64,000 nt of DNA from Octopus sinensis (GCF_006345805.1 NC_042998.1:190216001-190280000), one strand, 5' to 3'; shown: positions 9,107-46,603, counted from the stretch's first letter. Notes: a model not told the origin generated them from the letters alone. Numbers and translations: made by a program.

Positions 9107-9134
9107 TTAATACCTTGTTCTCCCAGTTGACTTG

Positions 9135-11166: not shown

Positions 11167-11198
<32 letters not shown>

Positions 11199-13229: not shown

Positions 13230-13231
13230 TT

Positions 13232-13272
<41 letters not shown>

Positions 13273-13470: not shown

Positions 13471-14079
13471 ATATATATATATTCTTGCAAGTTCATACTA
13501 ATAATAAATGTATTTACAGTAACACGAAATATAACCTGGAAAATTAAATAAAAATGTATATTTGTAAAAATAAGTTCAGGCAGGGTGGGGGAGTCAGAGG
13601 ATAAGCATTTCTTCTTAGTAATAGTAGATGTATTAATAAATAAATTAATATGAAGCTTTAATCCCAGACAAGTAGGAATAAGCTATCTTGATCGGGAATA
13701 AAAAGGCATCCAATTTGTCTAAACAACAGTAAAGGATGGAAATAGCATCAGAATAACCTGTTTGATGACAAACAAGTTATCCCAATAGAAATTTTTTTAG
13801 TAAACAAAAATAAATATTATAGTACTTAAAAAGAAAAATAAATATTAAAATATCTTTGTGAAAAACTAAACCGTTACAATGTAGAGAAAATGTGGAGTGT
13901 TGTCAAAATGAAAATTCTAACAGAAAATGATATCTCAATGCACAAGATAAAAATGAAATGTTTGTATGGGAACAAGATGAGGCATCTGCTTTGATTTACT
14001 TTAAAGAATGATGAACAGAAAAACTGGAATGGAATTGTTAACTCTTTATAGAAGAGGGCAACATTTGTTGTGAATGTGT

Positions 14080-14662
14080 GCATGTGTCTGTATGTGTGTA
14101 TATATATTTATAATGTATATAGATAGCTATGCATGTATATGTATGCACACACACACATACAAAAAAATATGCACTTTAATCACATATATCTTCCACCATA
14201 TACATCACTACATATATATATATATATATATATACATATATATGCATGCATATATATTTTGTATATACATACATACGTGTATCTATATCATACATATATC
14301 ATAAATAGTATAATCACATATATATCACCTATGTTTTATATATATATATATCTGTATAAATTTTATATATATATATAACACCATATATAATGTATATCAT
14401 ATATATCAATATATATTTCATATATATATAATACCATACACAATATATATCATATATATCAATATATATATATCATCTATTTATATATGTATCTCATATA
14501 TAAATGTTTATTTCATATATATATGTATCCACCTTATATATATATCACATCTTCATTTTTACATCCTCATTTCCATGTGTCAGATGATGTATATATGTAT
14601 CATATATCACACTCACACATATATCACCATAAATATCACCACATACAGACACATGTGTATGC

Positions 14663-14701
<39 letters not shown>

Positions 14702-14725
14702 TACATACATACATAAACACATACA
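14080..14725. repeat. Compound (TA)/(CA) low-complexity block
   Basis: Direct inspection. Confidence 0.9.
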
Positions 14726-20439: not shown

Positions 20440-20506
20440 TCACTGAGGACGCTGTGGCATCGATGGTCGCTCAGGGATCCTGGGTGGAATACTAGGGATT
20501 GGGCGA
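20440..20506 (-). CDS. DNM1: Dynamin terminal coding exon: (L)RPIPSIPPRIPERPSMPQRPQ*
   Basis: Acceptor ttctttaatttcag|T in phase 2 matches the previous donor. Pro/Arg-rich with PxxPxR motifs; TGA at 20440-20442. Too short to appear on the ORF track. Confidence 0.88.
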
Positions 20507-21462: not shown

Positions 21463-21828
21463 ACATTATTTACATTTGACGGATAATTGTCATCTTGTTT
21501 GTTTTTAGCACATTTCAGCTGATATACTCTCCTGCCTTCATCAGGTATCTTGGGAAAATTTTGAACCTGGGTTCTCATTCCTAAGGTATTTTTCCATGTT
21601 ATTATTATTATTATTATTATTATTCAATTGAACTCAGAATCTTGGGGTTAGTAGCCCGCGCTCTTAATAATAATAATGATAATAATAATATCGAAAAATA
21701 CCTTAGGAATGAGAACCCAGGTTTGAAATTTCCCCAAGACACCTGATGAAGGCAGGAGGGTATATCAGCCAAAATGTTGTGTTAACAACAAACAAGAAGA
21801 GGACAAATATCCATCAAATGTAAATAAT
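21463..21828. repeat. Inverted repeat, ~160-nt arms with ~40-nt spacer; Penelope-like terminal repeat carrying hammerhead-like cores
   Basis: Arms are roughly 85-90% complementary by eye; each contains CTGATGA-A-GGCAG..CAGC(C/T)-(G/A)AAA. Confidence 0.7.
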
Positions 21829-22531: not shown

Positions 22532-22690
22532 AGAGGCTGACTTGACATGTGCATAGCAGCCTGTGGAGCATCAGGAGCTGGTCTACTTGGGACCTTTGGT
22601 GCAGGTCTACTTGGAATAGATGGCGTAGGTACTGGCCTAGAAGGTGGCATTGGCGGCCCACGAGGTCTGCTTGGTCCAGGTGAAGAAGGC
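22532..22690 (-). CDS. DNM1: Dynamin exon, proline-rich domain: (R)PSSPGPSRPRGPPMPPSRPVPTPSIPSRPAPKVPSRPAPDAPQAAMHMSSQP(L)
   Basis: Acceptor ttttctttag|G, donor CTCT|gtaagt, 159 nt, phase 2 to 2. Repeated PxxP/PSRP SH3-ligand motifs; overlaps ORF 22528..22785. Confidence 0.93.
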
Positions 22691-23181
22691 CTAAAGAAAA
22701 GGATTATAAGTTTTGTAAAGCAACAGATTTTGTGGAACAAGAATTCAATGATTGAGAAAAGGAAAAAAATAATACAAGTCACCAATGGTTAAATCTGACC
22801 TAAATTAAAACAAATAAAAATTGATCAATTATATTTTTGGGGGTAGATGAGGGAGCGTTTCAAATAAAAGACATGTTATTTGAGCATAATTACATATATT
22901 ACAGCAGAAATACATATTCTAAAACTCATACAAGTAGTAACTATCAAAGATATAAATCAACATTTCTGATTGTTGTGACATACATAATTACTCTCATATT
23001 CAACAGCCTGAACAGCAAAATATGACTGTCAATCAGTAAACAAGCATGAACTGTAAGCATTTTGTTCATAGACCATTTAAGCTTCACCTTTCATTTTAAC
23101 CCTTTTCAAACCAAACCCATCAAAAACCAACTCTAGTTCTATGATACAAAACTGCTCACTTTTAAATGTTCACATTATATA

Positions 23182-23380
23182 ATTTCAAATTTTGGTACAA
23201 GGCCATTACGTAATTTGATTTCAAATTTTGGTACAAGGCCATTATATAATTTGATTTCAAATTTTGGTACAAGGCCATTACATAATTTGATTTCAAATTT
23301 TGGTACAAGGCCATTACATAATTTGATTTCAAATTTTGGTACAAGGCCATTACATAATTTGATTTCAAATTTTGGTACAA
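23182..23380. repeat. 36-bp minisatellite, ~5.5 copies
   Basis: Unit AATTTGATTTCAAATTTTGGTACAAGGCCATTACAT; no spacers. Confidence 0.95.
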
Positions 23381-23384
23381 TTTT

Positions 23385-23660
23385 CGGGTAGGGGCAAGTC
23401 GATTAAATCAACCCCAGTATTCAACTGGTAGTTATTTTATAAGCCCCCAAAAGGATGAAAGGCAAAGTCAATCTCAGCAGAATCTGAACTCAGAGTGCCG
23501 CCTTGACCGGCTTCCGTGCCGGTGGCACGTAAAAAGCACCATCTATACATGGCTGATGCCAGCGCCGCCTTGACTGGCTTCCGTGCCGGTGGCACATAAA
23601 AAACGTAAAGATGGATGAAATGTCGCTAAGCAGTTTTCCCAGTGTGCAAACAATTCATCA
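23385..23660 (-). mobile_element. SINE family B with a foreign insert at 23495-23601
   Basis: gaactcaga|insert|aacgtaaag. Confidence 0.6.
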
Positions 23661-24629
23661 TACTTTACTGAAAACATTATAACGCTGACTTCCAAACAGT
23701 GACTTAATATACAAATTAATGAGAAAATTAGCTGTGTTACTAAATCCCTCTAAATTCTCCGTTATTTTTAAAAGCCACTGAAACACAATTGTATATTTCT
23801 TTAGAAATGTGATTATGAATAATTCAAGAATATCTTAAAAAATTAATTTTGGTCAGTGATAGAGATACAAATAGAACCGTAATTCTCCCTCACTCTGCAT
23901 TAACAAATGATGTGGGTGTAATATGCTGCTAAACTTACAACAGTCTGTTTACCAGTAATTAGGTTTCAAGAAAATCTAACAGAGGCAATAAATCTACTGA
24001 GAACCTACTTAACAGTACAGAATTTTATTTAAAACTACTGCTACAGATGGTATTACTATTAGATCTAGTCCTACTACTATTACTACACCTACAAGCTACA
24101 GAAGGAGCCTCTACATGGTCACATGAACAGCTGAAAATAGCAGCCAAATCTCTCTCCAGTTATACCTGATCATCTTAGAAAAGGAGGATACATTGGATCA
24201 TATGATCTTGTGTGTACTGTGCTTAAGAAAAGGAAGTGATGGTCATGGCTGGAACACCTTTAACCATAAGTCTCCTTAATTAAGTCTAACCTGGAGTTAC
24301 ACAACAAGAACAATTATTGTACAATAATTGTTATACAAAATGGGTTTTTTTTTATTATTACAATATTTAGGTACCATATCAAACTAGTGTGGTTGAGATG
24401 TGTAATACAGGACTTGTCTATTACACCAAAAAAAACAAAACTAATAAGCTAACCAGCTAATAAGCTATTTGAAACTGTCTCAGATGTCAAAGGCAGAAAC
24501 AAAGGATATAAAGAAACACACAACGGATTATAAGTAAATCTTGAAACTAGACTAATAGGTAAATTGCTAAAGGAACTGGAATATTTTAAATGGTAGCTAT
24601 AGGCATTTTATGTGTTCAGATTAGCTTAC

Positions 24630-24656
24630 ATGCTGGAATGACTCGGAGAACTCTCG
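24630..24656 (-). CDS. Candidate 27-nt cassette microexon of dynamin: (S)ESSPSHSS(M)
   Basis: tttgcctgtttaatatttcttttttccag|CGAGAG...CAGCAT|gtaagc. Symmetric phase 2, no stop, Ser/Pro-rich like the adjoining PRD, two CpGs in AT-rich surroundings. Confidence 0.62.
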
Positions 24657-25374
24657 CTGGAAAAAAGAAATATTAAACAGGCAAACATTTAAAACCATGT
24701 CTAACAATGAGGAAGGCTCAAAAGAAGTGGTAAGAAAACTGAATACAGTAAACGATTAGGCTGAATTTCATTAAGTTTGTACCAGTAAATCTGCAATTTT
24801 TTTTTTTTGTATTCTATGATAGCCACTAAGCACATAGATGTTTGCCATCAGATGTGAAGAATTAAAAAAGGAGCAACTTGTTTCTACATTGTTGCACCGT
24901 CAACCTACATTAAAGAAATTCAAAGCAAATTGCAGATATTGCAATTCTATAAAACATTTCCCCTATTTTCCTGGCACAGATCAAACAATTTTTCCCATTG
25001 CTGGTATAAGTGGTTTTTTAGGCATCCCCTGACTTTGCCTTTTTTTTTTTTTTTTTTGTTTAAGATGAACATTTTTGTTTGAGTAAAGGAAAAGGTACAC
25101 TGACTCTTGAAAGTGCCCTTGACTGGTAATGTTGAAGTTGACATTCAGTTAATATTTTTGTGGGGTCATATCAGTAGAGAAAACAGGAGAGAGATCCACA
25201 GGTTTATAATGGTTTGCGTGAAGTGCTTGGTACAGACTTTTGCCAGGTGAAATAATTAGAGTAATTAGAAGAAGAAAGGTAAGTAGGTCTGATCTTACAG
25301 TTTGCCAGCTTAGACCAAAAAAATTATTGTCATATTAAGAAAAAACACAAGAGGCAGTCTAGTACCTATTTCTT

Positions 25375-25600
25375 TACTACCCACTAGGGGCTAAACACAG
25401 AGAGGACAAACAAGGACAGACAAATGGATTAAGTCGATTATATCGACCCCAGTGCGTAACTGGTACTTAGTTTATCAACCCCGAAAGAATGAAAGGCAAA
25501 ATCGACATCGGCGGAATTTGAACTCAGAACGTAACGGCAGACGAAATACAGCTACGCATTTCGCCCGGCGTACTAACGTTTCTGCCAGCTCGCTGCCTTC
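25375..25600 (-). mobile_element. SINE family B, full length
   Basis: Reverse complement of the 3894 element. Confidence 0.8.
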
Positions 25601-25839
25601 TAGTACCATGGCTGTGGTGCAGTAGTATGTGAAGATTTGTCAATCACATGACTTCTTTGACTTTTAATGTTGTCTAGAATGTTCATGTATATAGCAATTG
25701 TCTGTCCCAGGAATGTGAACAATATCGTAGTGTGAAGTGGAATGTGTGTGCTTTGTAAGTCAGTTACTTTACAGAGGTGATAAATTTTTTATGTTCTAAA
25801 CCTTTTCCATATCAACCTACCTGAGACCAGGTTCTAGAA

Positions 25840-26319
25840 CAAGGGTCACCAAACTTTTTCAACCATCGACTCCCTTTAACCACTTCTCCTTCCATATCGA
25901 CCCCCCTTTAGCCACCTCACCTTCTGCATCGACCACCTGCCTCATTTAAAATATCTTAATACCCTACCCTACCGTACCATATCTTAAATGCATACTGGGT
26001 ACTGATGCTGGCAATTAAAACATTAGCTAAAATATAAATGTGCGAGAAATTAAGAAATTCTATTGAAGATGACACACATTTTACATTTAAAACTACGTGT
26101 ATACAGTATTAAACTTTCAGTTTTTATGAAGTTGTTTCCATGGTTAGAAAATGTGGAAAACACATCATATTGCTGGAATATCTTTTATTGAAACTGACAA
26201 CATAAATATGAGGGATGGGCATGGGTGAGCTGGTCTTTCGCACGCCAACCCCCATTCGACCCCTTGACTATCATTGAACTCCTGTAATTCCTCTCAGACC
26301 CCCTTTGGCAACCCCACTG
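25840..26319. mobile_element. Non-autonomous hAT (Charlie-like) element
   Basis: 8-bp TSD TTCTAGAA at 25832-25839 and 26320-26327 (NTCTAGAN is the Charlie target). Imperfect TIRs CAAGGGTCACCAAA / TTTGGCAACCCCACTG. Confidence 0.8.
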
Positions 26320-26616
26320 TTCTAGAACATAAACTATCTATTTAAAAATGTTTGTGTCATGATTTTATGTAGGAAGAGTCTATTTGCAGACATTAGCTTA
26401 ATAATGTAAATGATATTTATTAAACTGCTCCAAGTTCTTGATTCTTTACTGAGATAATTGAAATACATTCACTGTGCATTTCATTAGAAATATTGTCATG
26501 CTAACATACAGTTTTGACTCAGCAACTGTGTGGTCTAACAGTCATAACTACTTAATTCTAAATTATTTATTGAGCACTACCACCAAAAAATATCTCATTT
26601 AAACAAATTAGGATGC

Positions 26617-26656
<40 letters not shown>

Positions 26657-27098
26657 TAAACACCAGAACATAATGGATATTATATATTTTTTTAATGTCT
26701 ATACCCCACTAAAAACAAAAATAAATGGCACTAGTAGATAGGTTGTTCATGATAAGAGATGAGTGTGGAGAACATAACCATGTCTGGAGACACACCAGAG
26801 CTAACAAATTACATCAGAGAGATACAGGAAGATACAGAAAGAGCAAACTGATAGGAAACCTCAAATTCAAGAAATGGGTGAAACCATAAACAGAGATTCA
26901 GGTACCAAATGTAGGTGAAGATTTTGCAGATGGATAACTTTTTCAAAATTCCCAAAGATAAACTTAAAAGTAGAAGCTGTAATTTTTCTTTTCCTTCATT
27001 ATCCTATCATTCAACATTTGAAAAATTGTTTCTCTATTTGATTTGATATTAAATAATAATATATAAAAATATTAGGTTTTTTTTTAATTAATGTTTTA

Positions 27099-27283
27099 CA
27101 TCATCATCATCGTTTAACGTCTGTTTTCCGCACTAGCACGGGTTGGACGGTTCGACCGGGGTCTGGGGAGCCAGGGGCTGCTCCAGGCTCCAGTCTGATC
27201 TGGCAGTGTTTCTACAGCTGGATGCCCTTCCTAACGCCAACCACTCCACGAGTGTAGTGGGTGCTTTTTACGTGCCACCTGCA
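27099..27283 (-). mobile_element. SINE-like family D, 5' truncated
   Basis: Tail on the left; same core. Confidence 0.75.
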
Positions 27284-28559
27284 CTTTAATACAATTTTAA
27301 AAAGGTATAGGCATTGTTTCAGTTTAACTTGCAAATAATTTGTATAGATTTAATCCCTAAAGTGAAGAAAGTAAAGGAACTCAAAATAAAAGAAAATAGT
27401 CAACTAAGTTGAATTTAACAATTAAACTTCAACATATTTTTCTAGATAACTAAAATATTTTACAATATAGTCCATGTATATACAAAATACTGAAAACTGA
27501 AATATAAAAAAAAAAATCAATTTTACATTCAATAAAGAAAAATCTTTTCCTGATGTTCTGTAAATGTCTAATGTCCACTTTCTCATGCATCCATGGGTCA
27601 GATTGAGTTTATTGAGGCAGATTTTCTGTGGCTGGATGCCCTCCTTGTCACAATCTCTCCCCTGTTTCCAAGCAAGATAATATTTCCTTATTACTAAACC
27701 TGCTTACGTAGAATACTGGAAATGAGTGACACTGCTTGTATGACAGGGATACTCATCTACAACTATCACATGATGTGAAGAGAAGGAAACACAGTTTCTC
27801 TCTCTCTCTCTCTCATTCACACACACAATTTGCAGTTACAGCAATGCAATAATGATTCATCATCATCATCTCATGTCCATTATTAAAACACTATGACAAA
27901 CATATTACATTTCTGTTGACTCAAAAAATATATATAAAAGATTGCAATACTAAAGAACTCACAGCATACAACCCTAAAGTGTGTGTGTTACTATTTCCTT
28001 GCTTTGATGGTTGTGGACAAGTGTCACTGTAATGCAGGCAGTGTCCATTCCCAATATTCAGTGAAAATATGTGAAGGTTGGTGACAGAAAGAGCATCTGC
28101 CACAGAAAATCTAACTCAACATATTCTGTCCAACCCATGCAAGCATGGAAAAGTGGACATTAAAATGATGGTGATGATGTGTGGGTGAGAGAGAGAGAGA
28201 TTACAGGTTTACTTTCTACCTCTTTCGTATTTTTCAAAAAATAGAGCTCCGTATTTTATTGGACTGTGCCAATCCTTAATACTAGCATACAGCAACCGAT
28301 ATTTTGAATATAATGGAGATATGCGGCTCTTAAAACAAAGTGACCAGTCAAGGTTACAAATTATAGAAAGGAATTTATTAATGGTTCAATGACATTCAGA
28401 GCCATTTGAACAGACTCGCATTCTCATTTTGGTAGCTAAACTCTTCTCCACTCCCTTGAGTTGGAATGTGTGAGCAAGATATGGACTCTGCAAGCCACAT
28501 CTTGAGTTAACTAGCAGGATAGTAACTCCAAATATGAACTGATGCAGAGTGAGTGGGGG

Positions 28560-28890
28560 GGGATGGGTTCTAATGTTGCTCCTCTCTTTTTCTGAGTGAA
28601 GAACGGATTGTATAATGCTTCAGTACTAAATGCAATATTGCATGGTAGCAAGACATGCTCTGCTGGATGTATAATATCATCATACATGTATGAACAGTGG
28701 AACATAGATAAGCTGATAGTTAAAATAGGTATCGGAGTATTTTGCTGTAGCATATAAGAAAGAAATGCCAAGCAATTCAAAGAGGAGCCTGCAGGAGAAG
28801 AAAACCATGGAAGGCATGGGAAAAGTTGAGAAGGTAATCTCAAGATGCTGTACTAGAGAAAACTCATCCAACACATGCCAACATGTAACA
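28560..28890 (+). mobile_element. Highly decayed RTE-like 3' remnant
   Basis: LYNASVLNAILHGSK resembles LYxxxVxxxxLHGSETW; KTHPTH-like end. Confidence 0.45.
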
Positions 28891-30282
28891 GCAGACATCT
28901 GATAGTCATCACGATGATAAATTAATGGCTTTCTTATATCATTTCTGAAGAAATTATTAGATGGTTTTAAAACAGAGCAGGTTTTTCTACCACCTTTACT
29001 TTTTGTTTAAAAAAATATTCCAGTAACGGAAAATAATAACCTTTTCCCAAATTCAGATCTTACTTTTCAGAATTATAGAAGTTAATAAAAAAAATTATAA
29101 TTACTAAGAAAAAGAAGTTATTACGGAAATAATTTTTTAAATTCAGATTTTCACTAAAATTTACATAAAAATAAGTACTTTTTACAATTCTTGATATGGT
29201 CTTTGTTCAAGGCAATTATCACTATATAACTCTGATCAAATGATCTTATAGTGAAGATAGTGAGGAAATGTCACTCTATGCATACAGTCCATATCAGTAA
29301 GTAGTGACAATGCCATGTATAAAGACTAAACTACAAGCAAGTTAACAAGGGAGCTTCTACATGGTCATTCAACTTACTGAAATAGCAGCCAAATTTCTCT
29401 CAAAACTTAGCTATTGTTAGAAAAAACACACTGAATCATGTGGTCTTAAGCATACAGTGCCTAAGGAATAAGACATGATGGTCACAACTGGAATGCCTTT
29501 GGCTAAACAACCACTGTAAACAGAAGTGAACCAAATATTCCATTCATACACTGATGTTGATATATCATCATCATCATTGTTTAACATCCGCTGCTTGATT
29601 CTTGAGACTGACACGTATTTTCTAACCTATAGCTATATAAATATTTCCATGTGCGGTGAAGAATAACAAAAAGGCATAACACATTGGTTTATATACGGAA
29701 TTATTTTGAACTGTTAATCTTGTTGTTGGCCCTGATTGGGCAGACTTAGTTAGTCCAACTGTAACCTACCTTATTTTGCACATTTAAGTCTATATTATTT
29801 AATGTGTCAGTTCTTTTTCTAAGACAATAGGGTCTGATTTGAGGAAGATTTGGTTGCTGTTTCTAGCAGGCCAAAAAGGCATGTAGAGGCTACACCTTTA
29901 TCAATGATGCTAAATGGTACTATGAAAGGTTACCTTTAATATTCTTTTTATGTGTTAGTATTACAGAAGTACTCTCTCACTGGTTTGAAAACGTGCTTCA
30001 ATAAAATTACACATGGCAACAAGAACTTACAAATCCAGTGTGGAATTTCCTAATGAACTCAGGTGTGGAATTTAATTAAGATTGGTGACTCCATCTGGTT
30101 TGCATTGCTGCATTACTTTGTCTATATTTCTGAAGAGCACCCTCTGCAGCATTATGACACAAGATTCATAATGCTTCACCAGTGGTCATTACCAATTAGT
30201 AGGCAGCAAAGGCCCAACACAAAATATTAGCTGTATCATGTTGATTTTCTTCCATTCAAGATTATGATAGTTATGATATGAG

Positions 30283-30536
30283 GCCGGTGGCACGTAAAAA
30301 GCACCATCCGATCGTGACCGTTGCCAGCCCTGTCTGGCACCTGTGCCGGTGGCATGTAAAAAGCACCCACTACACTCACGGAGTGGTTGGTGTTAGGAAG
30401 GGCATCCAGCTTTAGAAACACTGCCAGATCAGACTGGGCCTGATGCAGCCTTCTGGTTTCCCAGACCCCAGTTGAACCGTCCAACCCATGCTAGCATGGA
30501 AAGCAGACATTAAACAATGATGATGATGATGATGAT
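30283..30536 (+). mobile_element. SINE-like family D
   Basis: Same core and tail. Confidence 0.75.
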
Positions 30537-30868
30537 GAGAGTCTATTTGAACTGATACAGTATTTATTAATAAATGCATTGTACTCATACTTCCAGTAAA
30601 ACAAAATTATGTTTGTATTAAGTAACTGATAAATAGATAACATTTTCTTGTATGATTCTAGTATAGACTGGCTAGAACCTTCAGTTTTATCATTTGTCTT
30701 TGTCTGTGTATGTGTGAATAATGCTCAAAAACAAAATGAAAAAAATCATTCTTTCTTTTTAGTCCAGTGGGGTAAAATAGTTTAAAAATTGAAAAAAATA
30801 TTCTCTCAGTTCTTGGAAAACATTTAATTTGAAAAAAATTGCTAATAAGACAAAAGTAAAATTCTTAC

Positions 30869-30871
30869 AAA
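30869..30871 (-). CDS. Candidate 3-nt microexon (TTT) of dynamin
   Basis: A ~70-nt pyrimidine tract ending ttttttttctccccag|TTT|gtaaga; frame-preserving. Prediction only. Confidence 0.35.
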
Positions 30872-33800
30872 CTGGGGAGAAAAAAAAAAAAAAGAGAAAG
30901 AATAAGAAGCAGGGTTGGTGAGAATAACAAAGGATAGAGGAAGTGAACATTTTTGAATCCAATTAATAAATCTGTTAAAATTTGATCCTATACATCAGTG
31001 ATGTATTAGACTTCTTCGAAGCAGTGGCATATGCTTGTATTTGAAGAATTATAACTCAAGGGAGATAATAATAGGAACAAAACCAACAGAACTTGCTAGT
31101 GCAAATTTTGCATCTTTCATAGCAAAACTTTCTGAAATGATCTTGAAGAAAATATTTTTTTCTCTTTTACCTTTCTTGTTCATAAAAGACAAATCAAGAT
31201 TAAAAATAGTTCAGGTTTGCAGCAACAGAAGGAATATTTGAAAACATCTATGTGTGCCTGTATTTTTGTATATATACACACACACTTTCATTTTGGTAAA
31301 CAACTTAAAGACCAGAAATGGTCAAATCAACTACCTATACACCAAAAGATGTAGTTTTTCTTTACTCACAATAAATGCCACTATCTTCCTAAAATGCACA
31401 TTTATAACTGTATCAAAGATTTTTTACCTGTTTTTAATATTTCAGAATTGGAAATAAAATGATTGGGTTTTTTTTTTTTGGGGGGGGGGGGGTAGTACAG
31501 TAAAAAATGAAAACTGTAAATTTGAAAAACTTAACAGAAAATTATTAGAAATATTTAGTCATATTTTTAAAACACACACACACAGTTTGGCTATTTCTTA
31601 TCTACTGTAATTGATCTCATTTAGAAATAAAAGACAAAATAAAACAGGAGAGAGAGAAGCAATTTAACCCAGCCCAAAAGAGAGCAAAATTAATTTTATA
31701 TTTAACAAGGTTATAGGATATGAAACATCCACAAGGCCAAAAAAATGAAGCTATTATAACAGAGCCTACTAGCATTCAGCATTAGGAAAAACTATACTAT
31801 AGTTTATAAGATTGATTCATAAGTTTTGTATATCCATCACATATCGAGTTTAATACAAGACATGCTTTTAATAACTAATTTTTAGATGAAGAATCAGAAT
31901 TGATTTATCTATTCTTCATTATTTAGAGCACGTGGGAAGCTGTTTTTTTTGGTGATGATTGTATTAAGTAAAGTGAAATCTTATTAAGTTAGAAGTGAAG
32001 TTCTGTATAAGAGGATTATTTCAAATAATGGGACTTGTATTAATTCAGATAATTGCTCCATTCCCCGTTATAATCAGGGGTTAGAGTAAAAAGCCTGTCT
32101 ACACAGTATTTGTGACTACTCCACTCAAAATTCAGTTGTAAAAAGCGCTTGCCCAAGATGTAAGAGGTAACCGTGAACTGTTTGAGATTGAGAAGATTGT
32201 AAATAGTGGGGAAAATAGATAGGGCACTAAAGAAAGTGCTCAGTTTCCAGGCGAATGGTAACTGTCCCCAAGATATTCAAGGAAACGCGAGAATCAGCAT
32301 CAAAACTGAAAACATTTTAACATCAATTTCAATTGAAAGTAACCGTTTTGGCTGATATAATGAAGTAAACAAAAAAGTTCATAGCACACATCCTTGTTTA
32401 AATGGAACAGGCAGAAAACTAGGGAAAGTAATAAGTTATAAATCAAACTTAATCCATTCTATTGAGAAACAAAGTTTCAGATAAATAACTTATCGGTACA
32501 ATTCCTATTTTCTATGAGACTAACTTTCATGTATACCATATTTTAGCAATGTCAAATCTGTTGAATTGAGAGAATACAAAATTTCATCTGAAAATACATA
32601 CTGTTCAGAATACCATTTGATTTTTAATTAACATTACTCGAATTTTGAGGTACAAAACAATGCAAAAAAAAAAAATAATGTAAATAAACCTTTGACATGA
32701 AATAAGTAGAGGTAAGAGTAGAAAACCAAGAAAGAAGAGGTAGAAGTGAGACGTAGATATAGAAAATACTGAGGAAAGCAAAAATATGTTTATGTAGCTA
32801 GAGTTCAAATAAATAATAGGATTATGGAGGTAATTCTCCAGATTATACACAATGAAAACATTTACAGGGATGCATACAACATACTTATGCAGCTGATTAT
32901 GTATTTCTGCTGAAGTTTTAGAGATTTACTTAAGGACTATAATGCAGTTTACCAATCCAGGTCAGAAATCTTTGCAGCTTGTTGAAGAGACAAGCAGTAG
33001 TGATTCCTGATGTCTCCTTCACTTTGTTTTTGCTAAGTTACTCCAGATCTAACAATGTGTTGTTTGAAATTCAGTGGAGGAGACAGGGTTTAAAGGTATC
33101 TAACTTCTCTGAAAACAGCAAATTCCCAATGGTTCTTTGTAGGGAATTCTGTACACTGATATAACGCAAGTAGTTATGTGACAAGATTCAAAGAGGAACT
33201 CAAAATTAACCCCAATCATGGCTACAGTTCAGGGTTCGAACGAACGTACATATGTATGTATGTATGGATATATGTATATGAGACGGGGGGGGGGGGTGCT
33301 AGACAGACAGACAGAGAACATGCATAAAATTTGGTGTTTGATTTAGATCAATGACATCAAACTTAGAATTAAAGAATTAAATGGGTTCATTTCTAATTTA
33401 CACAACATTATTCAGATACCAATTAAACTAAATGAATTTTTAGATTAAAACTGATATTTAATTAGAGAAATTTAATTGAAGCATGTGTATACCATTTGAT
33501 TACCATATTCTAGTTATTGTGTCATATGTTCATAAAGATAATACTTTTCAGATAACTGTATTCAAAGACTAAGCCTTTTATTAACTAAAATAGGAATTCA
33601 ATTCATTAATCATTATAAAAATTTATATTACCACTGAAATTAAAGAAAAAATAATATCATTTCTACATGAAAGTAGTATAGAAATATAAATCATAATTTA
33701 TTTACAAAATTAGGAGAGAGTAAAAGAAGAGAAAGCAAATAAAGCGAAGAAAAATGTCAAGATAAAATTTTTGTCAATCTCCCACAAAGATATTTAGTTA

Positions 33801-34502
33801 TACAGAATTCAAAATTTAGATTTCAAGTTTGAAGAAAAGGGTGGGAAAATGGATTATGTAAAGCACTGAAAATAGTGAATAAGCTGAGAGTTCTTCTGGA
33901 ATGAAATAGAAAACAATATTTTGAAGCAGTAACCAAAAAGCAGTTTCAAAGTAGAAAAATATTCTTTGAATTGAGCCACACAAGGTATCGTCAAAATAAC
34001 CACCAGAAAAGGGAATTCAGGAAAATTTAGGAAATTTAGGAAAATATTTTGGTGGGTAGAATTAATTTGGTAGTATAAGGAATGCTAGCATAAAAATTTT
34101 TTTTTTTTTTTAAATACAAATTAGCAGACGAGTTGTTGTATAAATGTGTTTAGGTTTTTATAAGTGATTAGTATGGTTAATAAAAACAGAAAATGCACAC
34201 AAATATTAATTAATTAATTTTAAAACATTGTTTTAAAATAAGTAACTCAAATTTTCAAAAAAAAGTAATCAACAACTAATTTTTATGTTATTGGTCTTTC
34301 AAAGGTTTCGAATTTTAATATTTTTATATAATTATGGATTTTAATTGGTGAGTTAAACAACTCTAAACATTCATTCGTTAACTTTGAAATTTAGTAACCA
34401 GCTAAATTATGAAGAAGTAGGAAGGTAGCAGCGAGAGTAGTAGCAGAATAGTAGCAATAATTCAATAACTTGTCTCCTGCCAGCTTACGGCAAACCACAT
34501 AC

Positions 34503-34538
34503 CTGCTAACTTTCGTGTATCCATTTTTCACAGCTAAC
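34503..34538 (-). CDS. Candidate 36-nt cassette microexon of dynamin: (R)LAVKNGYTKVS(R)
   Basis: ttttcactcttacaaaatttcag|GTTAGC...TAGCAG|gtatgt. Symmetric phase 2, no stop, good acceptor and CAG|GTATGT donor. No transcript evidence available. Confidence 0.6.
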
Positions 34539-34782
34539 CTGAAATTTTGTAAGAGTGAAAAATTGCGTGTGAAGTATTGGCGTTCAGTAAATAAACTTTG
34601 TGATTGCAGTATAATAGTTTTGGTAGGCTTGAGTATTTCCATCAACAAAGCTATGTTGACTAATTACAGCACAACTCGTTTTAACAGCACTTTCAAGTTT
34701 ATTTTTCACAAAGTAAAATGTCCATGTTGGGAATAACCTGACTAAATAATCAAGTTTGTTTATAATGAATGTATTGATCACA

Positions 34783-35183
34783 CTCTTTACTCTTTTTACT
34801 CTTTTACTTGTTTCAGCCATTTGACTGCGGCCATGCTGGAGCACCGCCTTTAATCGAGCAACTCGACACTGGGACTTATTCTTTTGTAAGCCCAGTACTT
34901 ATTCTATCGGTCTCTTTTGCCAAACCGCTAAGTAATGGAAACATAAACACACTAGCATCGGTTGTCAAGCAATGCTAGGGACACACACACAAACACGCAT
35001 ATATATATATACATATATACGACGGGCTTCTTTCAGTTTCCGTCTACCAAATCCACTCACAAGGCTTTGGTCGGCCCGAGGCTATAGTAGAAGACACTTG
35101 CCCAAGGTGCCACACAGTGGGACTGAACCCGGAACCATGTGGTTGGTAAACAAGCTACTTACCACAGAGCCACTCCTGCGCCT
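34783..35183 (-). mobile_element. SINE family A, young copy
   Basis: Colinear with and highly similar to 2041-2440. Confidence 0.8.
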
Positions 35184-35439
35184 GCTCTGAATTTTTTTTT
35201 TTTTTATCCGTCTTTATCAAGACTATTTCTTGAGATTCAGATGAAGAAACTATTTTTCAGAGAGGATCAATTCCAGTGAATAATATGTAAAATAGGATTC
35301 ACTGTCATCCAATGAGGAGGCTTCTACACAGTTGCTTGACCTACATAAATTAGCTGCTGAATCTCCCTGGAATCTTTAACATTTAAAAACTATATAAAGG
35401 GAAAATTGGATAAAGTAGTTCTTGGTGTATTGTATTTAA

Positions 35440-35658
35440 CCCTTTAGCGTTCAGATTATTCCGTCAAACATAATGCTTATTGATTCCCATTGATTTGAAT
35501 TAATCATGCATAATCTCATATCTTCAAGATCTTGATGGTGTAATTACTTAATGTAGAATAACATTGTAGGGTAGGTGTGAGAGCCTGGATCTGGTCAGTT
35601 TGAACATAAAACAGATTAACTATTTTGGCCAGATATGGCCGGTTTAAATACTAAAGGG
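35440..35658. mobile_element. piggyBac-like MITE (219 bp)
   Basis: TTAA|CCCTTTAGCG ... TACTAAAGGG|TTAA; same family as 51541-51759 and 8897-9106. Confidence 0.8.
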
Positions 35659-36149
35659 TTAAAATTAAAAAATGGTGTAGACATGGCTGGAACACCTTTG
35701 ACATAGCTTTGCTAGATCGGGGCTGACAAGGGGTTCAGCAGTATTTTTACTGGGTTTATTTATTTATTTACTTATTTATTGTTTTAATAGTAAGAAAATT
35801 ATCTACATAAGAAATTAATAACACAACTTAGAAAAAAAAATTAACAAGATAACTTAGAAAGAAAAAAGAAAGTAAATGTTTATATACCAGAGTTGCTATT
35901 ATTTCCACCATTAGTACTAAAATGTTTTTAAGAGTTTTAGCAAAGGATGCACACCCGACGATTTATTGCTATTGATAAAGCAAATTAATCAATGCAAATG
36001 CAAAATCACATGCTGCTGGTGATACAAACATTGCAGAAACAATGTTAGGAGAGCTATATTATACAATTCTTCACAACATTATTATTGTTTCAATAATAAT
36101 AATAATCCCTCTCTCTCTTTCGGAGAGGCACAAGCACCTACACGCACAT

Positions 36150-36316
36150 GTACACACACGGCAGTAACTTCCGCCTGCCGAATTCAATCACAAAGCTTCG
36201 GTCGGCTCGGGGCTATAGCGGAAGACACCTGCCCAAAGTGCCACGCAGTGGGACTGAACCCGAAACCATGTAGCTAGGAAGCAAGCTCCCTAACCACACA
36301 GCCATGCCCGCGCCTA
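36150..36316 (-). mobile_element. SINE family A-like 5' part
   Basis: tRNA-like head GGTTTCGGGTTCAGTCCC on the minus strand. Confidence 0.65.
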
Positions 36317-36424
36317 CTAATAATAATAATAAAGCTAAGTTTATTGCTGAATATTTTAAATGTACATTTCAACTAATGTGTCTTTTAGGTGAAATGTCAA
36401 TGCTGTACTTTAATTAGTGGTTAA

Positions 36425-36619
36425 CCCTTTTCTTACAATATTTCTTTTGAAATACACTGCCTGTGTTTCAATTAATTTTGGAAATAATGAATTCAGTAAA
36501 ATAATTTTGTCATTAAGTTGGTGTTTGGGACATAAATCAAGATGAAATTTTTGAATGTTTTAACTGGGGTTACTTTAAAATACAGGAAATCCATCACAAA
36601 ACTAGGGGCAGTCTAAGGG
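36425..36619. mobile_element. Second piggyBac-like MITE family
   Basis: TTAA|CCCTT ... AAGGG|TTAA termini; different interior. Confidence 0.55.
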
Positions 36620-36730
36620 TTAAGCAGTAGTTGTGTCCTATAACAATAATAAAAAGTATCAAGTACACAATTTGAGATCTCTGTACTGTTAACTTAATAT
36701 TTCATGCTTCTGTGTTTTACTTTATTTTCC

Positions 36731-37119
36731 ACTAGCACTATGACCTGGTAATGCCGGGTCATAGTGCTAGTGCATGCATATACAGCTGCGTGTGTGCACA
36801 CATACACGCGAGTACTGTCCAAATCTCCGACCAATCACATACAGCTAGCTGGCATTTAATTGGCATATCAAGTTTCGGGCATTTTGATTGGGTTTTGGAT
36901 AGAAAATTCACAAAAAAAAGTCACTTCTATTGATTTTTTAATGGCTTTGCGGGGTGACTGGGGAAATGTAAAGATGTGCATGACGTAAAGATGTGCATGA
37001 CCACCCTTGGACGGTTTTCAATGACCATAGAAAGTGCGAGCCCTCTAACTGAAAAATTGTGGATTTGTATAAAGGACACACACACAGACATTTTGCTGTT
37101 CATATATATATATAGAGAT
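36731..37119 (+). mobile_element. Same Helitron/Helentron-like element, copy 2
   Basis: Colinear with 20690-21057, plus a small internal duplication (gtaaagatgtgcatgac x2). Confidence 0.6.
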
Positions 37120-38849
37120 TGTATTCAGCTAACCTATTGATAAGAAATAGAATGGGTGATAGATGGGCAGAGTAACAAAGTGAGTGGTAGATAGGCACTT
37201 AATATAAACATTAAAGATACCCAAATGTAGATAATACACATCACTATCTCCATCAACTTCTTCATAATTTTAGCACCCTTTTTCTCAAGATTACATGGGT
37301 TGCTGAGTCCTATTTGATATAGCACTTCACCACAAGTTGCAATCATCTGTCATCCCTTTCATGAAATTTAGTTTCTTGAAATAAGTCATAACCTCCTTGT
37401 TCCATGTTTTCTTTGATCTCTTTCTTTTTTTGGTGGTACCTCTGTACATGACTTGCATGGCTCTCACAAACCATTCATCTATCCATAGTTTTCTAAGCAA
37501 CCATCAGACTACAGACTGTGAAGCCCAACCAAATCCCTTCTTCAGGTCAACAAAAGATAAGCAGCGTGACTTACATTTAGTTTAGTACTTCTCCTAGGGT
37601 TGTCCCTATAGGAGAGTGTTTTGGTGGTACTCCTGCAAGCATAAACCCAAACTATATTGCATCTAGGCTAAATATCTTCCTAGTCCTTCTGTTGCTCCTT
37701 TTGTAATTTTTTTAGCCTCAGTGAAACTGAGTTCTGGAAGTGCTGTGTATTCCACCCACATATAACATTAATTCACACACCCTACCCCCAATGTAGCAAA
37801 CTACATCTCTTCTTCATGCATTATACTTATTTCTCCTTCCCCGACTCCTGCAGCCCAACACCAATCCGTCTTCTCTCTCTCTCTCACCTATCCTCCACCT
37901 GCCAACTATCCTTGCTACCCTGTTGCCTTCCTCCCATATACCTGTGTTTCAGCACTCGCTACATTCTCTCCACTCCCATTCTGCACTTTTATGAACTCCC
38001 TGCTCTTGCACCTTGGGGAATCCTCCTCCATTCCATTTATATTCACATCCTTGTACCTTGAGAGTATGCCCTAGCACACCACCACCACCATCTCTCTCAC
38101 TCTCTCTCTTTCTCTGATTGGGGTAACCATGTATCTCCTATACCGCAAGACACCTCTTTCCATCACTGTCATACTCTAAAGCTTTCATCAGTTGGCACAA
38201 AGCCACCTCCCTCAATACCACTTCCCCTCTCAGTTGAGGGATCTTTGTCTTGTAAGTTATGTGGTGACCTCGCCAGTGCTGGCAGAACATAAAGACATCC
38301 AGTTCACTCTGTGAAGTGGTTGGCATTAGGAAGAGTATCCAGATGTAAAAACCACGTCAAAACAGACAATGGAATTTGGCACAATCCTCTGGCTTACAGC
38401 TCCTCTTAAGAGTATTGAAGAGAGACACTAAATGAATTTGATGATGATGATGGTCCATCAACTTATGTCTTTGCCATTGCTTCTTTCTGGAGCATCTTCT
38501 TTCCTCTACAGTAGTAATAATACTGCTACAACAATCACTAGGTAGGACACCATTCTGTTTGACTATGCAGGCACCAAACATTTCATATTTTAAGCATCTC
38601 AGCAATTCTCCTTTATGATCCAGTTGGCTTCATGTTATACCACAAACAGTCACTTGGCTATAAATTACTATGGTGAAAAATCAAGGCAAATTCACCAAAG
38701 TCTCCTGACCAAATACAGAATCAATATGTTGTTCTCAGTCTTATGAGGGCAATGACATTTTCTTATATCACATAATGTTGACAAATATTGTTAATCATTA
38801 CATGACATCTCAAGTTAATGCATTATCAATTTGTAGCAATAGATTATTC

Positions 38850-39390
38850 AGTACATCTGCTCAGTGCTGACAGGGCCACTCTCCTCATTGACAAAAACAC
38901 AATCCAGAAAAGATGGGCAGTGCACTTCAACAAAATCCTGAGCAGGCCTTCCTCTATGCTGAGGCCAATGCTCACATGCACCAGAAAGCAATTAAACTCC
39001 TTTTAAATGGCAAAGCACTAGGTTATGGCCCCATCCCAACTGAAAAATATTAGGTAGGGAAGCCAGTCTTGACTCAAAAGCTCACCAACCTCTCTCAGAC
39101 CATGTGGCAACAGGAAATTGTTCCTCAGGAGTTCAAGGATGCTTCTATTTTCCATCTCTACAAGGGAAACAGGGAGTCCTGTGACAACCAGTGAGGACTT
39201 CCTCTCCTTGTAATCACTGGCAAAATAGCCACAAGAGTCCTCCTTAACCACCTCACCCAACACATGGCTGATGGGCATCTACTAGAGAATCAGTGAGGCT
39301 TCAGAGAAGGCCAAGGAACAATCAGCATGATGTTTGTAGCATGCCAACTTCAGGAGAAGTGTCAGGAACAAAACAGGGATTTGTTTTACT
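38850..39390 (+). mobile_element. RTE-type LINE RT-domain remnant
   Basis: LLSADRATLLIDKNTIQKRWAVHFNKIL; VPQEFKDASIFHLYK; GKIATRVLLNHL; GFREGQGTISMMFVACQLQEKCQEQNRDLF across frameshifts. Confidence 0.85.
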
Positions 39391-39734
39391 AAGTATATTA
39401 AATAATCAAGTTACACAAGTTCTCCTCTTCAATACCTTGGTTCATTTAAAATGGATATCAGATGCAATAATGAGAAACTTGATACTGATTTTCATATTAA
39501 TGATGCTAATTGTAAGGCACTATTACCTAATGTGAGCACTTAACTCTTAACGATGGGTTATTATCATGTATAGAAATTACTCCGATAAAAGTAAACAACT
39601 CATTTACTTTGACTATTACCCTAGTTATGTACCAAGTCTATATTTGGTGAATATAAAAAATTTAGCCTTCTTAATACACAGGCTCTTGTTTTGTACATTA
39701 GATTATATCCATTATTTCTACAATGCTCTTCAAT

Positions 39735-39950
39735 ATCTGGCAGTGTTTCTATAGCTGGATGCCCTTCCTAACACCAACCACTCCACGAGTGTAGTGGGTG
39801 CTTTTTATGTGCCACCTGCACAGGTGCCAGGGGGGTCTGGCATCGGCCACGATCAGTTGGTGCTTTTAATGTGCCACCGGCACGGAAGCCAGCCAAGGCG
39901 GCGCTGGCATCAGCCACGTTCGGATGGTGCTTTTATATGTGCCACCAGCA
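39735..39950 (-). mobile_element. SINE-like family D, tail missing
   Basis: Core plus internal repeats. Confidence 0.7.
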
Positions 39951-40734
39951 ATGAATTAATGTATCTACATTAAAGCTTACCATTGATTACACATTCACTA
40001 TCATGTGCCAGAAATAACTGGATATCTTGTAAATTATAGCACCTAAATTTGCATTTAATTGTAGAAGATAGATTCGTTTGAGCATCAGGTAGAATACCTT
40101 GTAGTTGTTCCACTTCTCTGCTCTCTGACATCAAATCCCTTCAAGGTAATTTAAAGACAGTACCAACTGAGAGTTGTGGATTGGCAGAGCTGTTCGAGTG
40201 TCAAATTAGATACCTTGTGGTATCTATCTTCTCCAGCTCTCTGCATACTGATAACAATGCCTACGAAAAAACTAATGCCAAGCTGATTCAACCGTCGCCT
40301 CTCCCCTGAACAACTTAAGTGATGTGGAGAGCACAGACTTACATGCATAGACAACACTAGAATTGCACAACAAAGCAACCTTGCACATGTCTGCATCATG
40401 AACAGGACCTTTCCAGATACAGATAAACTATACTGTCTAGAGGTTATTGATTGATAGAGAAATATGATGTGTAACAATTTTTACTCAGCTTAATGGAACT
40501 TTATTGACTTACTAACTACATCATATGTATGGTACTGTAATTGCAAGAACTGGGTACTGAAAATATCTATGAAAAAAAAAAAATAATAATAAATAAATAA
40601 ATAAAAATCTATTCTCTTCCCAAAAGGAATAAGCTGTAGAGTTATTGCCCTTTGATTGTATTTGCAGAATTCACTTTTTTCTATTTTTTTTTTGTGTACA
40701 ATTATCCTAAAATGTAATTTTTCCATGCATCCAT

Positions 40735-41060
40735 AGATTGGATGGGTCTTCAGCATAGTGTCATGTCACTTGTTACAGTTCTTCGTTATCTCCCTTGCAA
40801 AGTGCAGCCTCTTGAGATCAACTTTCACCACTTCTTCCTATGCCTTCTTTGATTTTTCCTCTTCAGCAGATTCCTTTTACTTGGGTTGCTTGACTCCTGG
40901 CTAAATATACCAGACATGAAGCTGATATTGTTCCTTGTTCCTCTCTTCTGTTCTTTCCAAACCTGTCTCTTAGCTTTTATGGCTCTATTTACTGTCACCT
41001 CCACTTGGGTTGCAACATTGCTCCTTGCACATATCTGGTCTGGGAGCTCACAGCAAGGTT
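40735..41060 (-). mobile_element. Highly decayed RTE-like 3' remnant
   Basis: Minus strand reads EEVVKVDLKRL...MLKTHP, a typical RTE C-terminus. Confidence 0.45.
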
Positions 41061-41204
41061 GTCTTATAGAAACTTCCAGCTGTCTTCAGTTATAAATTTC
41101 TATCTCCTCCTCCTCCTCTTTCACATAGCATCACTTAATACACTTCTGAACCTACATCTGTGTGAGGGATATTTCAGCCTCAACACCTCTCTTCTCTCAC
41201 TTTC

Positions 41205-41586
41205 TTTTATTCAACAATCACGCTCGGAGCACCATCCAAGCATGATCGTTGCCAGAGTAGCTATCTGGCCTCTGTGCCGGTGGCATGTAAAAGTGCACCA
41301 TTCGAGCTTGATTGTTACCAGCATCGCCTTACTGGCACCTGTGCCGGTGGCATGTGTAAAAGATTCAAGCGAGGTCGTTGCCAGTACCGCCTGACTGGTC
41401 CCATGCTGGTGGCACATAAAAGCACCCACTACACTCTCGGAGTGGTTGGCGTTAGGAAGGGCATCCAGCTGTAGAAACTCTGCCAGATCAAGATTGAAGC
41501 CTGGTGCAGCCATCTGGTTCACCAGCCCTCAGTCAACCGTCCAACCCATGCTAGCATGGAAAGCGGACGTTAAACGATGATGATGA
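41205..41586 (+). mobile_element. SINE-like family D
   Basis: Core, internal repeats and tail. Confidence 0.75.
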
Positions 41587-41794
41587 TTTCTTTTTGTTGG
41601 CCCTGATGCCAATTTTACTTAAAGTATTTATTCCACATCATTTCATGCATCAAACTACTGCCCGGGTATTTTGCCGATGGGAAACATAATGTGAAGACAT
41701 ATGGAGACACATGCATATTCATTCATTTGTTCCATAACCATTTCTTTAGCATGAGCTGGACATAAACTTATTACTGAGACATTATTTCTCATGC

Positions 41795-42046
41795 AGCGCT
41801 TTCCATGCTAGCATGGGTTGGACGATTTTGACTGAGGGCTGGCGAACTAGATAGCTACACCAGGCTCCAATCTTGATTGTAGTGGGTGCTACACTCTCGG
41901 AGTGGTTGGTGTTAGGAAGGGCATCCAGTTGTAGAAACTCTGCCAGATCAGATTGGAGTCTGGTGCAGCCATCTGGTTCGCCAGTCCTCAGTCAAAATCG
42001 TCCAACCCATGCTAGCATGGAAAGCGGACGTTAAATGATGATGATG
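41795..42046. mobile_element. Rearranged (fold-back) family D element
   Basis: 41795-41878 is the reverse complement of ~41948-42030. Confidence 0.7.
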
Positions 42047-43225
42047 CTTTTCCTGTCACTAATCTGTAGCTGTGTTTCAAATAAGGGATCATTTTATTCC
42101 ACTTGTCTTGAAAGTGCAGGGCTGGAAGATGATCTGTTGACAGCAAATGTCAACATAAATTTACCATTTTGTTCAAATGCTTCCAATGTGTAAACATTTA
42201 CACACACACACACAGAGGTTACTAATTCCATTCATAAGGCATTAGTTGGTCTGAGGTTACAGTAGAAAACACTTGCCAAAATATACACATACACACATAT
42301 TACAGGCTTCCATACAGTTGCCATCTAACAAATTTCACTCACAAGGCATTTGTCATTTTGAGGTTATTGTAAAAGACACTTGCCCAAAGTGTCATAGTGA
42401 GATTATTTCTGAAACTAGTTGTGCAGCTGCCTTGTGGATCACACAGCCATGTCTCCCTCTCTCTGAAAGAGATAGATCAGATCAAAATGATCTATTACTG
42501 GTAAGTGTGTAAACCTGCACTACCTATCCATGACTGAATAATTTGCAACTAAATTGGCAGAGCCACTCTTGGTTCTCATCCTGTTTTGTGGAGGATGTAT
42601 GGACATCTAAGACCAAAACCAATATCTGTCAAGAAGAATAGATGAACTCAACAGGGAGGCAATAGCCATGCATTAAATCTACAAACTGAGTAAAGGCCCC
42701 ATTAAAGTTTTGTAGTCTAGCATTGTTGACTCTTAGTAACCCCTACAATTGGCTGTTTCTCTCAGACATACTTGCTTTGCTTTTCCTCTAAGTTAAGGGA
42801 GACCCAGGTGAGAAAAAATTCTTGATAATTGCAATGGCCACCTAAGTTAAATTCCAAAAACTACTCTAAAACATAGTAGGACCTTGTCATTATTCTTACC
42901 CTTTAACATAAAGAACATTAGAGATGTATCTTCAGAAATGTATAAAATATTCCATGCCATTATAAGAAAGAAATGGCTTCAAGCCAGCAGTAAAGAAAAT
43001 ATAGCTGAAAGAATATAGAGAAAATTAGAGAAAGAGGAAAATTTGCACATTCAAAAGTAGCCAGCATAATAAAAAAAAGAGTTTAGTTCCTTTGCGTTTT
43101 TTTGTGTTTTTTTTTTGTTAGTATTTATGGAATCAGAAGATTTTGTTTAGTACAATATGAAAAAAATGCCAAATAGAACAGGAAGCAAAGATGTCGATTA
43201 GAGAGAATGGAATAGCTTTACATAC

Positions 43226-43413
43226 CTAGAGGGTCCATTCTCTGCTCTTTCTGCACGCAACCAATCATTGTCTACAGGTGGAGGGAGTGGAGTAGTCACT
43301 GTACTAGTGGTCACTTCACTAATTATATTCAATGCTTCTTTGGTAGCATGATACATGCGCAGAATTTCTTCTCTTCTCATGGCCTCTTCAGAGGATTCTT
43401 CCATTAAAGTATT
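43226..43413 (-). CDS. DNM1: Dynamin exon, GED end: [62 protein letters not shown](R)
   Basis: Acceptor ctattag|AAT, donor CTAG|gtatgt, 188 nt, phase 0 to 2. Overlaps ORF 43198..43404; contains the NTLMEES...LRMYH..KEAL and PPPVD..WL motifs. Confidence 0.97.
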
Positions 43414-44998: not shown

Positions 44999-45058
44999 CT
45001 GATCAGCAGACGCATACAACTGAGCCAACATTTCTCCACCACTTATAAAATCTTTCAC
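44999..45058 (-). CDS. DNM1: Dynamin exon, GED: VKDFISGGEMLAQLYASADQ
   Basis: Acceptor cattccag|GTG, donor CAG|gtaaat, 60 nt, phase 0 to 0. Aligns to human TKEFIFSELLANLYSCGDQ (recalled). Confidence 0.93.
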
Positions 45059-46456: not shown

Positions 46457-46603
46457 ATCATTTACTATTAGATGCATAATAGTTTTTGGAACCAAATCCC
46501 GATGTGTTTTGTAAACTAATCTCATGTAGGAATCTACTAAATTTCTGATGGTCTCCACTTGTCGCTCCAGCTGAGGATCCATGGATGTATTGTCATCTTT
46601 TGA
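46457..46603 (-). CDS. DNM1: Dynamin exon, stalk/GED start: [49 protein letters not shown]
   Basis: Acceptor gttttag|TCA, donor GAT|gtaagt, 147 nt, phase 0 to 0. [19 protein letters not shown] is the conserved dynamin motif. Confidence 0.97.

Follow-up and report, generated by a model that had tools for sequence, protein, structure and literature searches.

Dynamin locus and its GED-PRD junction

The stretch of DNA analysed here (hereafter the window) comprises 64,000 nucleotides of the Octopus sinensis genome (GCF_006345805.1 NC_042998.1:190216001-190280000). It carries on its minus strand a dynamin gene, whose exons were mapped from position 47133 down to 20440 (Table 1). A 20.5 kb phase-2 intron of this gene separates the last exon of the GED region (hereafter the GED-end exon) from the first exon of the PRD. 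An initial annotation of the window had proposed that this intron hides an array of three frame-preserving neural microexons of 36, 3 and 27 nt, which could be combined into up to eight isoforms. The present analysis deals with these three units, with an unlisted 42-nt unit in the same intron, and with a comparison of all four with related genomes.

The spliced product of the mapped exons matches the Pfam GED family PF02212 (E=2.4e-23; 82.5 bits against a cut-off of 21.4). It can also be aligned with residues 595-858 of dynamin-1, PRD included (E=5e-70). Additionally, the end of a PH domain precedes the GED, as residues 1-39 of the spliced product are matched by chains 1dyn and 2dyn. Judged by these matches, the host gene is a classical dynamin, and both the gene context and the phase-2 intron at the GED-PRD junction given by the initial annotation are borne out. 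The GED-end exon (43413-43226) is part of the Pfam GED match, is aligned with dynamin-1, and shows 83% conservation with two related loci, L001 and L003. The first PRD exon (22690-22532) has a homologous exon in a further locus, L002, at 12596-12736. In the dynamin-1 alignment the window reads SRP-SSPGPSR-PR opposite the phospho-box RRSPTSSPTPQRR, and the large intron (43225-22691) is located at the exact start of this vertebrate phospho-box.

The three AG-exon-GT units are indeed present in the intron where they had been proposed. All of them are no longer than 51 nt, are multiples of 3, are stop-free and have canonical AG/GT borders. Across the eight possible combinations the junction codons are AGG, AGT, AGC, TTC, TTG or ATG and never a stop, which confirms that the units keep the frame open in any combination (8/8). 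Inclusion of the 27-nt unit replaces the junction R by S-ESSPSHSS-M with the frame kept, and the example peptide of the initial annotation is correct. Repeats internal to the window make up about 19% of the large intron, and none of them overlaps a candidate unit.

Table 1. Candidate units, their counterpart in related loci, predicted junctions and mapped dynamin exons (exon borders are marked by a slash; positions refer to the window unless a locus is named)
Feature	Position	Strand	Sequence and remarks
27-nt unit	24630..24656	(-)	tccag/CGAGAG...AGCAT/gtaagc; tttcttttttccag/CGAGAGTTCTCCGAGTCATTCCAGCAT/gtaagc
36-nt unit	34503..34538	(-)	cag/GTTAGC...AGCAG/gtatgt; peptide RLAVKNGYTKVS
3-nt unit	30869..30871	(-)	ccccag/TTT/gtaaga; behind T16 run
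42-nt unit	39257..39298	(-)	ctctgaag/CCTCACTG...GTGTTGG/gtgagg; peptide SLTDSLVDAHQPCVG; in-frame, stop-free
30-nt unit	L001 15488-15517; L003 2488-2517		ttttctttcag/AGAATCTTCTCCAAGAAATTCAATGATTCT/gtaaga; phase-2 compatible
Predicted junction, GED exon to 27-nt unit			CCCTCTAG/CGAGAGTTC; also GGACCCTCTAG/CGAGAGTTCTCC
Predicted junction, 27-nt unit to PRD exon			TCCAGCAT/GCCTTCTTC; also CATTCCAGCAT/GCCTTCTTCACC
GED-PRD intron, 20,535 nt	22691..43225	(-)	GTATGT...TTTAG; phase 2
GED-end exon (last of GED region), 188 nt	43226..43413	(-)	62 residues and codon bases AG; phase 2 at end
First PRD exon, 159 nt	22532..22690	(-)	(R/M)PSSPGPSRPRGPPMPPSRPVPTPSIPSRPAPKVPSRPAPDAPQAAMHMSSQP; opening residues (R)PSSPGPSRPRGPP
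Last coding exon	20440..20506	(-)	(L)RPIPSIPPRIPERPSMPQRPQ, then TGA stop
GED exon, 60 nt	44999..45058	(-)	VKDFISGGEMLAQLYASADQ; conserved in L001 and L003; context
GED exon, 147 nt	46457..46603	(-)	49 residues; Pfam GED match; context
Most upstream mapped exon	47133-47007	(-)	upstream context

Chance level of the candidate units

Short in-frame units are abundant in an intron of this size. Counting every phase-2, stop-free AG-(3 to 60 nt, multiple of 3)-GT unit in the 20.5 kb intron gives 904, including 82 of only 3 nt, while mononucleotide shuffles average 777. As the same length, frame and AG-GT features are shared by all 904 units, those features do not discriminate between exons and decoys, and the array motif by itself is at chance level. 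The lesson for method is a general one: finding AG-(3n)-GT units in a long intron is no evidence of exons, and conservation alone singled out one plausible exon among them.

Splice-site strength, scored with a crude generic metazoan position weight matrix (PWM), ranks the four units high among the 4,529 AG-N(1-60)-GT units of the intron: the 42-nt unit comes first, followed by the 27-nt unit (2nd) and the 3-nt unit (3rd), and the 36-nt unit is placed 11th. Units that score at least as well as the 36-nt unit number 13 on the sense strand and 12 on the antisense strand, with 1-13 elsewhere in the window and a mean of 9.5 in first-order Markov sequences. At the score level of the 27-nt and 3-nt units there are 3 sense and 8 antisense units, against 0-4 elsewhere and 1.9 in simulation. 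Control sequences of about 17-20 kb hold 0-8 units that match the score of the 3-nt unit, and four of the five controls hold 3-8. Strong pseudo-units are thus equally common antisense. This fact, together with the 904 units that arise by chance, speaks for a rival explanation by which chance produced all three proposed units as pseudo-exons, even the 27-nt one; it is taken up again below with the comparative evidence.

The individual units differ in how they come by their scores. The acceptor of the 36-nt unit is weak (0.2 bits), and the Lys- and hydrophobic-rich peptide of this unit is unlike the Ser/Pro-rich linker into which it would be inserted. The score of the 3-nt unit comes from the T16 run, and its donor is made weaker by the exonic bases. 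The 42-nt unit outscores all three proposed units although it was not listed by the initial annotation, which indicates how easily such units arise. It is unsupported and, like the 36-nt and 3-nt units, indistinguishable from decoys. Only the 27-nt unit rises above chance, and it does so only when the cross-species comparisons described below are added.

A recursive splice site (polypyrimidine-AG/GTRAGT) was also looked for. The whole window contains 0 matches to YYYYYYNYAGGTRAGT at up to one mismatch, and in the 3-nt unit the AG and the GT are kept apart by three bases.

A conserved counterpart in related genomes

Contigs of relatives were obtained through a protein search whose query combined the exons with the three inserts; it matched genomic read-through open reading frames (ORFs) of the GED-end exon in other animals. 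L001 lies on an ENA assembly contig of 213 kb (ERZ21867824 ctg119033l), of which 10 kb on each side were compared, and its exons are 76-83% identical to those of the window. L003, a Logan contig, is 2,972 nt long and has a GED-end exon 84% identical to that of the window. L002 is more distant and mollusc-like, with 72% identity. The loci L003 to L007 belong to one species (99% identity). These contigs come from the Logan runs ERR12921339, SRR9969974, ERR12945500 and ERR14857108; four have 99% identity and a common end at a CA-repeat, which lies about 420 nt beyond the conserved block described below. A preprint on the Sepia officinalis genome (bioRxiv 10.1101/2025.04.22.649952) cites run ERR12945500 as short reads of Acanthosepion esculentum (golden cuttlefish). 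The species behind L003 to L007 is probably this cuttlefish. L001 represents a second species, with a GED-end exon 95% identical to the cuttlefish exon and introns that are mostly unalignable.

Both species carry a 30-nt unit (Table 1) which is identical at 30 of 30 positions and encodes R-ESSPRNSMI-(L), to be compared with S-ESSPSHSS-M in the window. Its distance downstream from the GED-end exon is 5.3 kb in L001 and 1.49 kb in L003. Neither this interval nor the rest of the L001 and L003 loci contains a proline-rich exon, which places the unit in the homologous intron. Moreover, the 30-nt unit forms the centre of a 172-nt block of 92% identity (L001 15437-15607; L003 2438-2607). This is the sole block of such quality outside the coding exons of the two loci, the next-best intronic blocks being 89 nt at 74% and fragments of at most 33 nt. 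A search for further loci with the block, by an antisense ORF overlapping it in L003, found only the four contigs of the same species. Up to 40 nt past the donor, three to four YCAY (Nova-type) motifs occur at the unit of L001 and L003, and one at that of the window.

The 30-nt unit is flanked by conserved intron, about 50 nt on its upstream side and about 90 nt on its downstream side, whereas at the constitutive GED-end exon the conservation between L001 and L003 breaks off no more than 3 nt from the exon borders. Regulated cassette exons are usually marked by such long conserved flanks. Their presence at the 30-nt unit and absence at its constitutive neighbour therefore suggest that the unit is a cassette rather than a constitutive exon.

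The other proposed units have no such counterpart. If conserved and collinear, counterparts of the 36-nt and 3-nt units would be expected between the GED-end exon and the 30-nt unit, yet this interval (1.49 kb in L003, 5.3 kb in L001) holds no similar unit and no other conserved block. The 42-nt unit has no counterpart in L001 or L003 either. A probable ortholog with preserved splice sites and frame was found for the 27-nt unit only. Conservation of AG/GT units in related species thus holds for the 27-nt unit and fails for the 36-nt and 3-nt units. As a set of three real microexons, the proposal stands in part: the 27-nt unit is probably one, with its conserved counterpart, while the other two lack a counterpart and have splice signals of decoy grade. 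The 36-nt unit is most likely a pseudo-exon and the 3-nt unit most likely a product of chance, judging from the same comparisons, although the two could be lineage-specific.

The hidden array with up to eight combinatorial isoforms is left unsupported by these results. In its full form, all three units, perhaps together with the 42-nt unit, would be real lineage-specific neural microexons giving eight or more isoforms. The preserved frame in every combination and the position of all units outside window-internal repeats speak in its favour. So does the fact that the three best-scoring units of the 4,529 are all in-frame and stop-free (prior about 0.2 each), which is mildly unusual but concerns three cases picked out post hoc. 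Against it stand two relatives which conserve a 27-nt-like unit but have no counterpart of the 36-nt and 3-nt ones, the weak acceptor and unfitting peptide of the former, and the T16 run behind the score of the latter. An array of this kind is considered very improbable.

Orthology of the 27-nt and 30-nt units

Orthology was examined with one target fixed in advance, the conserved unit of L001 and L003. Among 822 in-frame units of the window intron, none matches the peptide RESSPRNSMI better than the 27-nt unit does (score 24; next 21). None of 400 second-order Markov simulations of the intron, and none of 5 real control sequences, produced an in-frame unit with a splice score of at least 5.7 together with a peptide score of at least 24. 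With the splice threshold relaxed to at least 0, the same peptide threshold was reached in 0.75% of the 400 simulations. Furthermore, the nucleotides of the two units agree in register when counted from the acceptor (TTCTCCGAGTCATTC versus TTCTCCAAGAAATTC; shuffling, p=0.004). At four of the seven aligned codons the codon differs while the residue is kept (GAG/GAA, AGT/TCT both Ser, CCG/CCA and TCC/TCA), and such synonymous-type differences point to constraint at the protein level.

Several observations weigh against an orthologous exon. The peptide likeness is short (ESSPxxS) and its margin small, and an unconstrained six-frame scan of the intron gives other peptides at 24-25. The flanking intron cannot be aligned between the window and L001, and nucleotide alignment of the window intron with those of L001 and L003 returns low-complexity matches only. 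It was a tblastn search with the peptides of the candidate units that first revealed the unit in L001, although its conservation in L003 does not depend on this search. The 10 kb compared do not reach as far as the PRD exon of L001, and the splice-site matrix was untrained on the species of the window. No unit resembling the 27-nt one is present in the intron of L002, and no PRD-like or Ser-rich insert was seen in the intron of a further locus, L008, which was read by eye only. Finally, protein collections yielded no spliced cephalopod dynamin, either with a composite query of the three inserts or in an exhaustive search with the GED-end exon; the matches were genomic read-through ORFs and non-cephalopod transcripts only, none of them with an insert.

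Taken with the high counts of chance units, the unalignable flanks, the peptides of equal score in unconstrained frames and the lack of an insert-bearing product give some weight to the chance explanation. According to this explanation, the block shared by L001 and L003 is either a conserved non-coding element of the intron or a microexon that exists in their lineage only, and its likeness to ESSPSHSS is coincidental. The joint occurrence of splice score, strand, phase, intron and peptide, which was never reproduced in simulations or controls, argues against such a coincidence, as do the nucleotide match in register and the synonymous-type codon differences. The non-coding version is further disfavoured by Rfam, in which no family matched the window, L001 or L003, conserved block included. 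We regard coincidence as the less likely reading, though it is the most serious of the alternatives. The 27-nt unit is probably a real exon orthologous to the 30-nt unit, on the strength of these genomic comparisons.

The history of the intron can be sketched from the same loci. In L002 (10001-12740) an intron of 2.4 kb occupies the same position in phase 2 (GG/gttagt ... tttag/T), and in L008 (208-925) the intron at the GED-PRD position measures about 0.3 kb. In a further locus, L009, the exon stands at the very end of the contig. Read-through ORFs of vertebrate dynamins cease to be dynamin-like at the same point (...SGRR), which suggests that the intron position is old. Compared with these lengths, the 20.5 kb of the window and the more than 10 kb of L001 imply a great expansion in cephalopod-type lineages. 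As no unit was found in L002 or L008, the insert seems to have arisen within the lineage to which the window and its cuttlefish-type relatives belong.

Favoured reading and proposed mechanism

On balance, and with moderate confidence, we favour the reading that the GED-PRD intron contains one real, conserved cassette microexon, the 27-nt unit, and that the 36-nt and 3-nt units are pseudo-exons such as occur by the hundred in any long AT-rich intron. The 27-nt unit might alternatively be a constitutive exon, overlooked in coleoid dynamin by simple gene models, an idea that draws on its strong splice sites and on the frame and peptide conserved between lineages. The long conserved intronic flanks in L001 and L003, missing at the constitutive neighbour, argue against constitutive use. 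Moreover, the direct junction aligns well with dynamin-1 without any insert, and L002 and L008 lack the unit. A constitutive exon is accordingly judged improbable.

If the 27-nt unit is a cassette exon, it would be alternatively spliced, and its inclusion would swap the junction Arg for S-ESSPSHSS-M while keeping the reading frame. The insert would place an acidic, Ser-rich stretch with a Ser-Pro site directly before PSSPGPSRPR, the equivalent of the phospho-box. It may add or shift a proline-directed phosphorylation site, or may alter the length or geometry of the linker at the start of the PRD. Changed phosphorylation or a changed linker could in turn tune how SH3 or F-BAR partners bind the PRD. 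Phosphorylation at the phospho-box acts as a switch in vertebrate dynamin-1, and we know of no splice site reported at the GED-PRD junction in other animals. That the 27-nt unit might be neural-specific is a guess by analogy. A wider scheme would join the shared 27-nt microexon with lineage-bound 36-nt, 3-nt and possibly 42-nt units into a combinatorial, neuron-specific array, which would set PRD phosphorylation and the choice of SH3 and F-BAR partners in synaptic vesicle endocytosis; this scheme we consider hardly credible.

Should the 27-nt exon be real and regulated, cephalopod dynamin would possess a splice-controlled insert at the very point where dynamin-1 has its phosphorylation switch. 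Such an insert would offer a testable handle on the tuning of endocytosis in large invertebrate brains, for instance at the squid giant synapse. Additionally, gene models that skip the 27-nt exon would be corrected.

Comparison with known splicing systems

The closest parallel is offered by the neuronal microexons of bilaterians, which depend on Srrm3/Srrm4 and the eMIC. Like these, the units of the window and its relatives are 27-30 nt long, multiples of 3 and stop-free. They also fall in a disordered linker beside an interaction region of an endocytic or synaptic protein. The intron flanking the unit is strongly conserved between L001 and L003 but cannot be aligned between the window and L001. 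A difference is the UGC near the 3' splice site, which is inconsistent here: TGC is found 27 nt upstream of the acceptor in the window, 14 nt upstream in L003, and 65 and 72 nt upstream in L001. A literature search returned nothing relevant on dynamin microexons in cephalopods, or on a link between dynamin and the Srrm3/Srrm4 programme there. The 27-nt unit is a probable conserved microexon at an interesting position.

Classical dynamin splicing provides a second comparison. It includes the mutually exclusive middle-domain exons and alternative C-terminal tails of DNM1, a 4-residue insert in DNM2, inserts in DNM3 and the isoforms of Drosophila shibire. The present case concerns the same family and resembles these in that short segments and PRD content would be changed and partner binding altered. 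It differs in that the insert stands immediately before the phospho-box equivalent, and to our knowledge none of those splice sites corresponds to the GED-PRD junction intron.

The 36-nt, 3-nt and 42-nt units are, in turn, much like ordinary pseudo-exons, that is decoy AG...GT pairs, being abundant, equally frequent antisense and unconserved. The 27-nt unit is set apart from pseudo-exons by its conserved, phase-compatible counterpart in other species.

Other features of the window

Downstream of the PRD exon, a stretch of the window at 21490-21546 (-) resembles L001 19358-19417 (60 nt at 77%). It was rejected as an exon because it has no frame or splice context, and it looks like a dispersed repeat. 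One dispersed repeat family occurs at 8968-9327 (-), 41211-41522 (-) and 49841-50173 (-), and also at 27136-27267 and 53575-53730. Its spurious ORFs share the sequences LQLDALPNANH...VVGAFYVPPAQ and KAPTTL.EWLALGRASSCRNTARSDWSL and have no Pfam match. Intronic ORFs searched against Pfam likewise gave nothing significant.

Long, imperfect microsatellite arrays of TA/CA type are present at 10964-11511, 13148-13471, 14487-14852 and 55940-56821. They yield overlapping 'YIYIYI' ORFs of 100-290 aa on both strands, which are artefacts of the ORF track. Furthermore, three ORFs resemble transposon remnants, namely 519-896 (+), 7963-8310 (+) and 47774-48055 (+), none of them significant in Pfam. The first shows a weak, sub-threshold match to a homeodomain-like helix-turn-helix. 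The other two have in common the motif ...AEAWNKLP / ...ADPWNKLP, which we take to be that of retroelement ORF2 tails.

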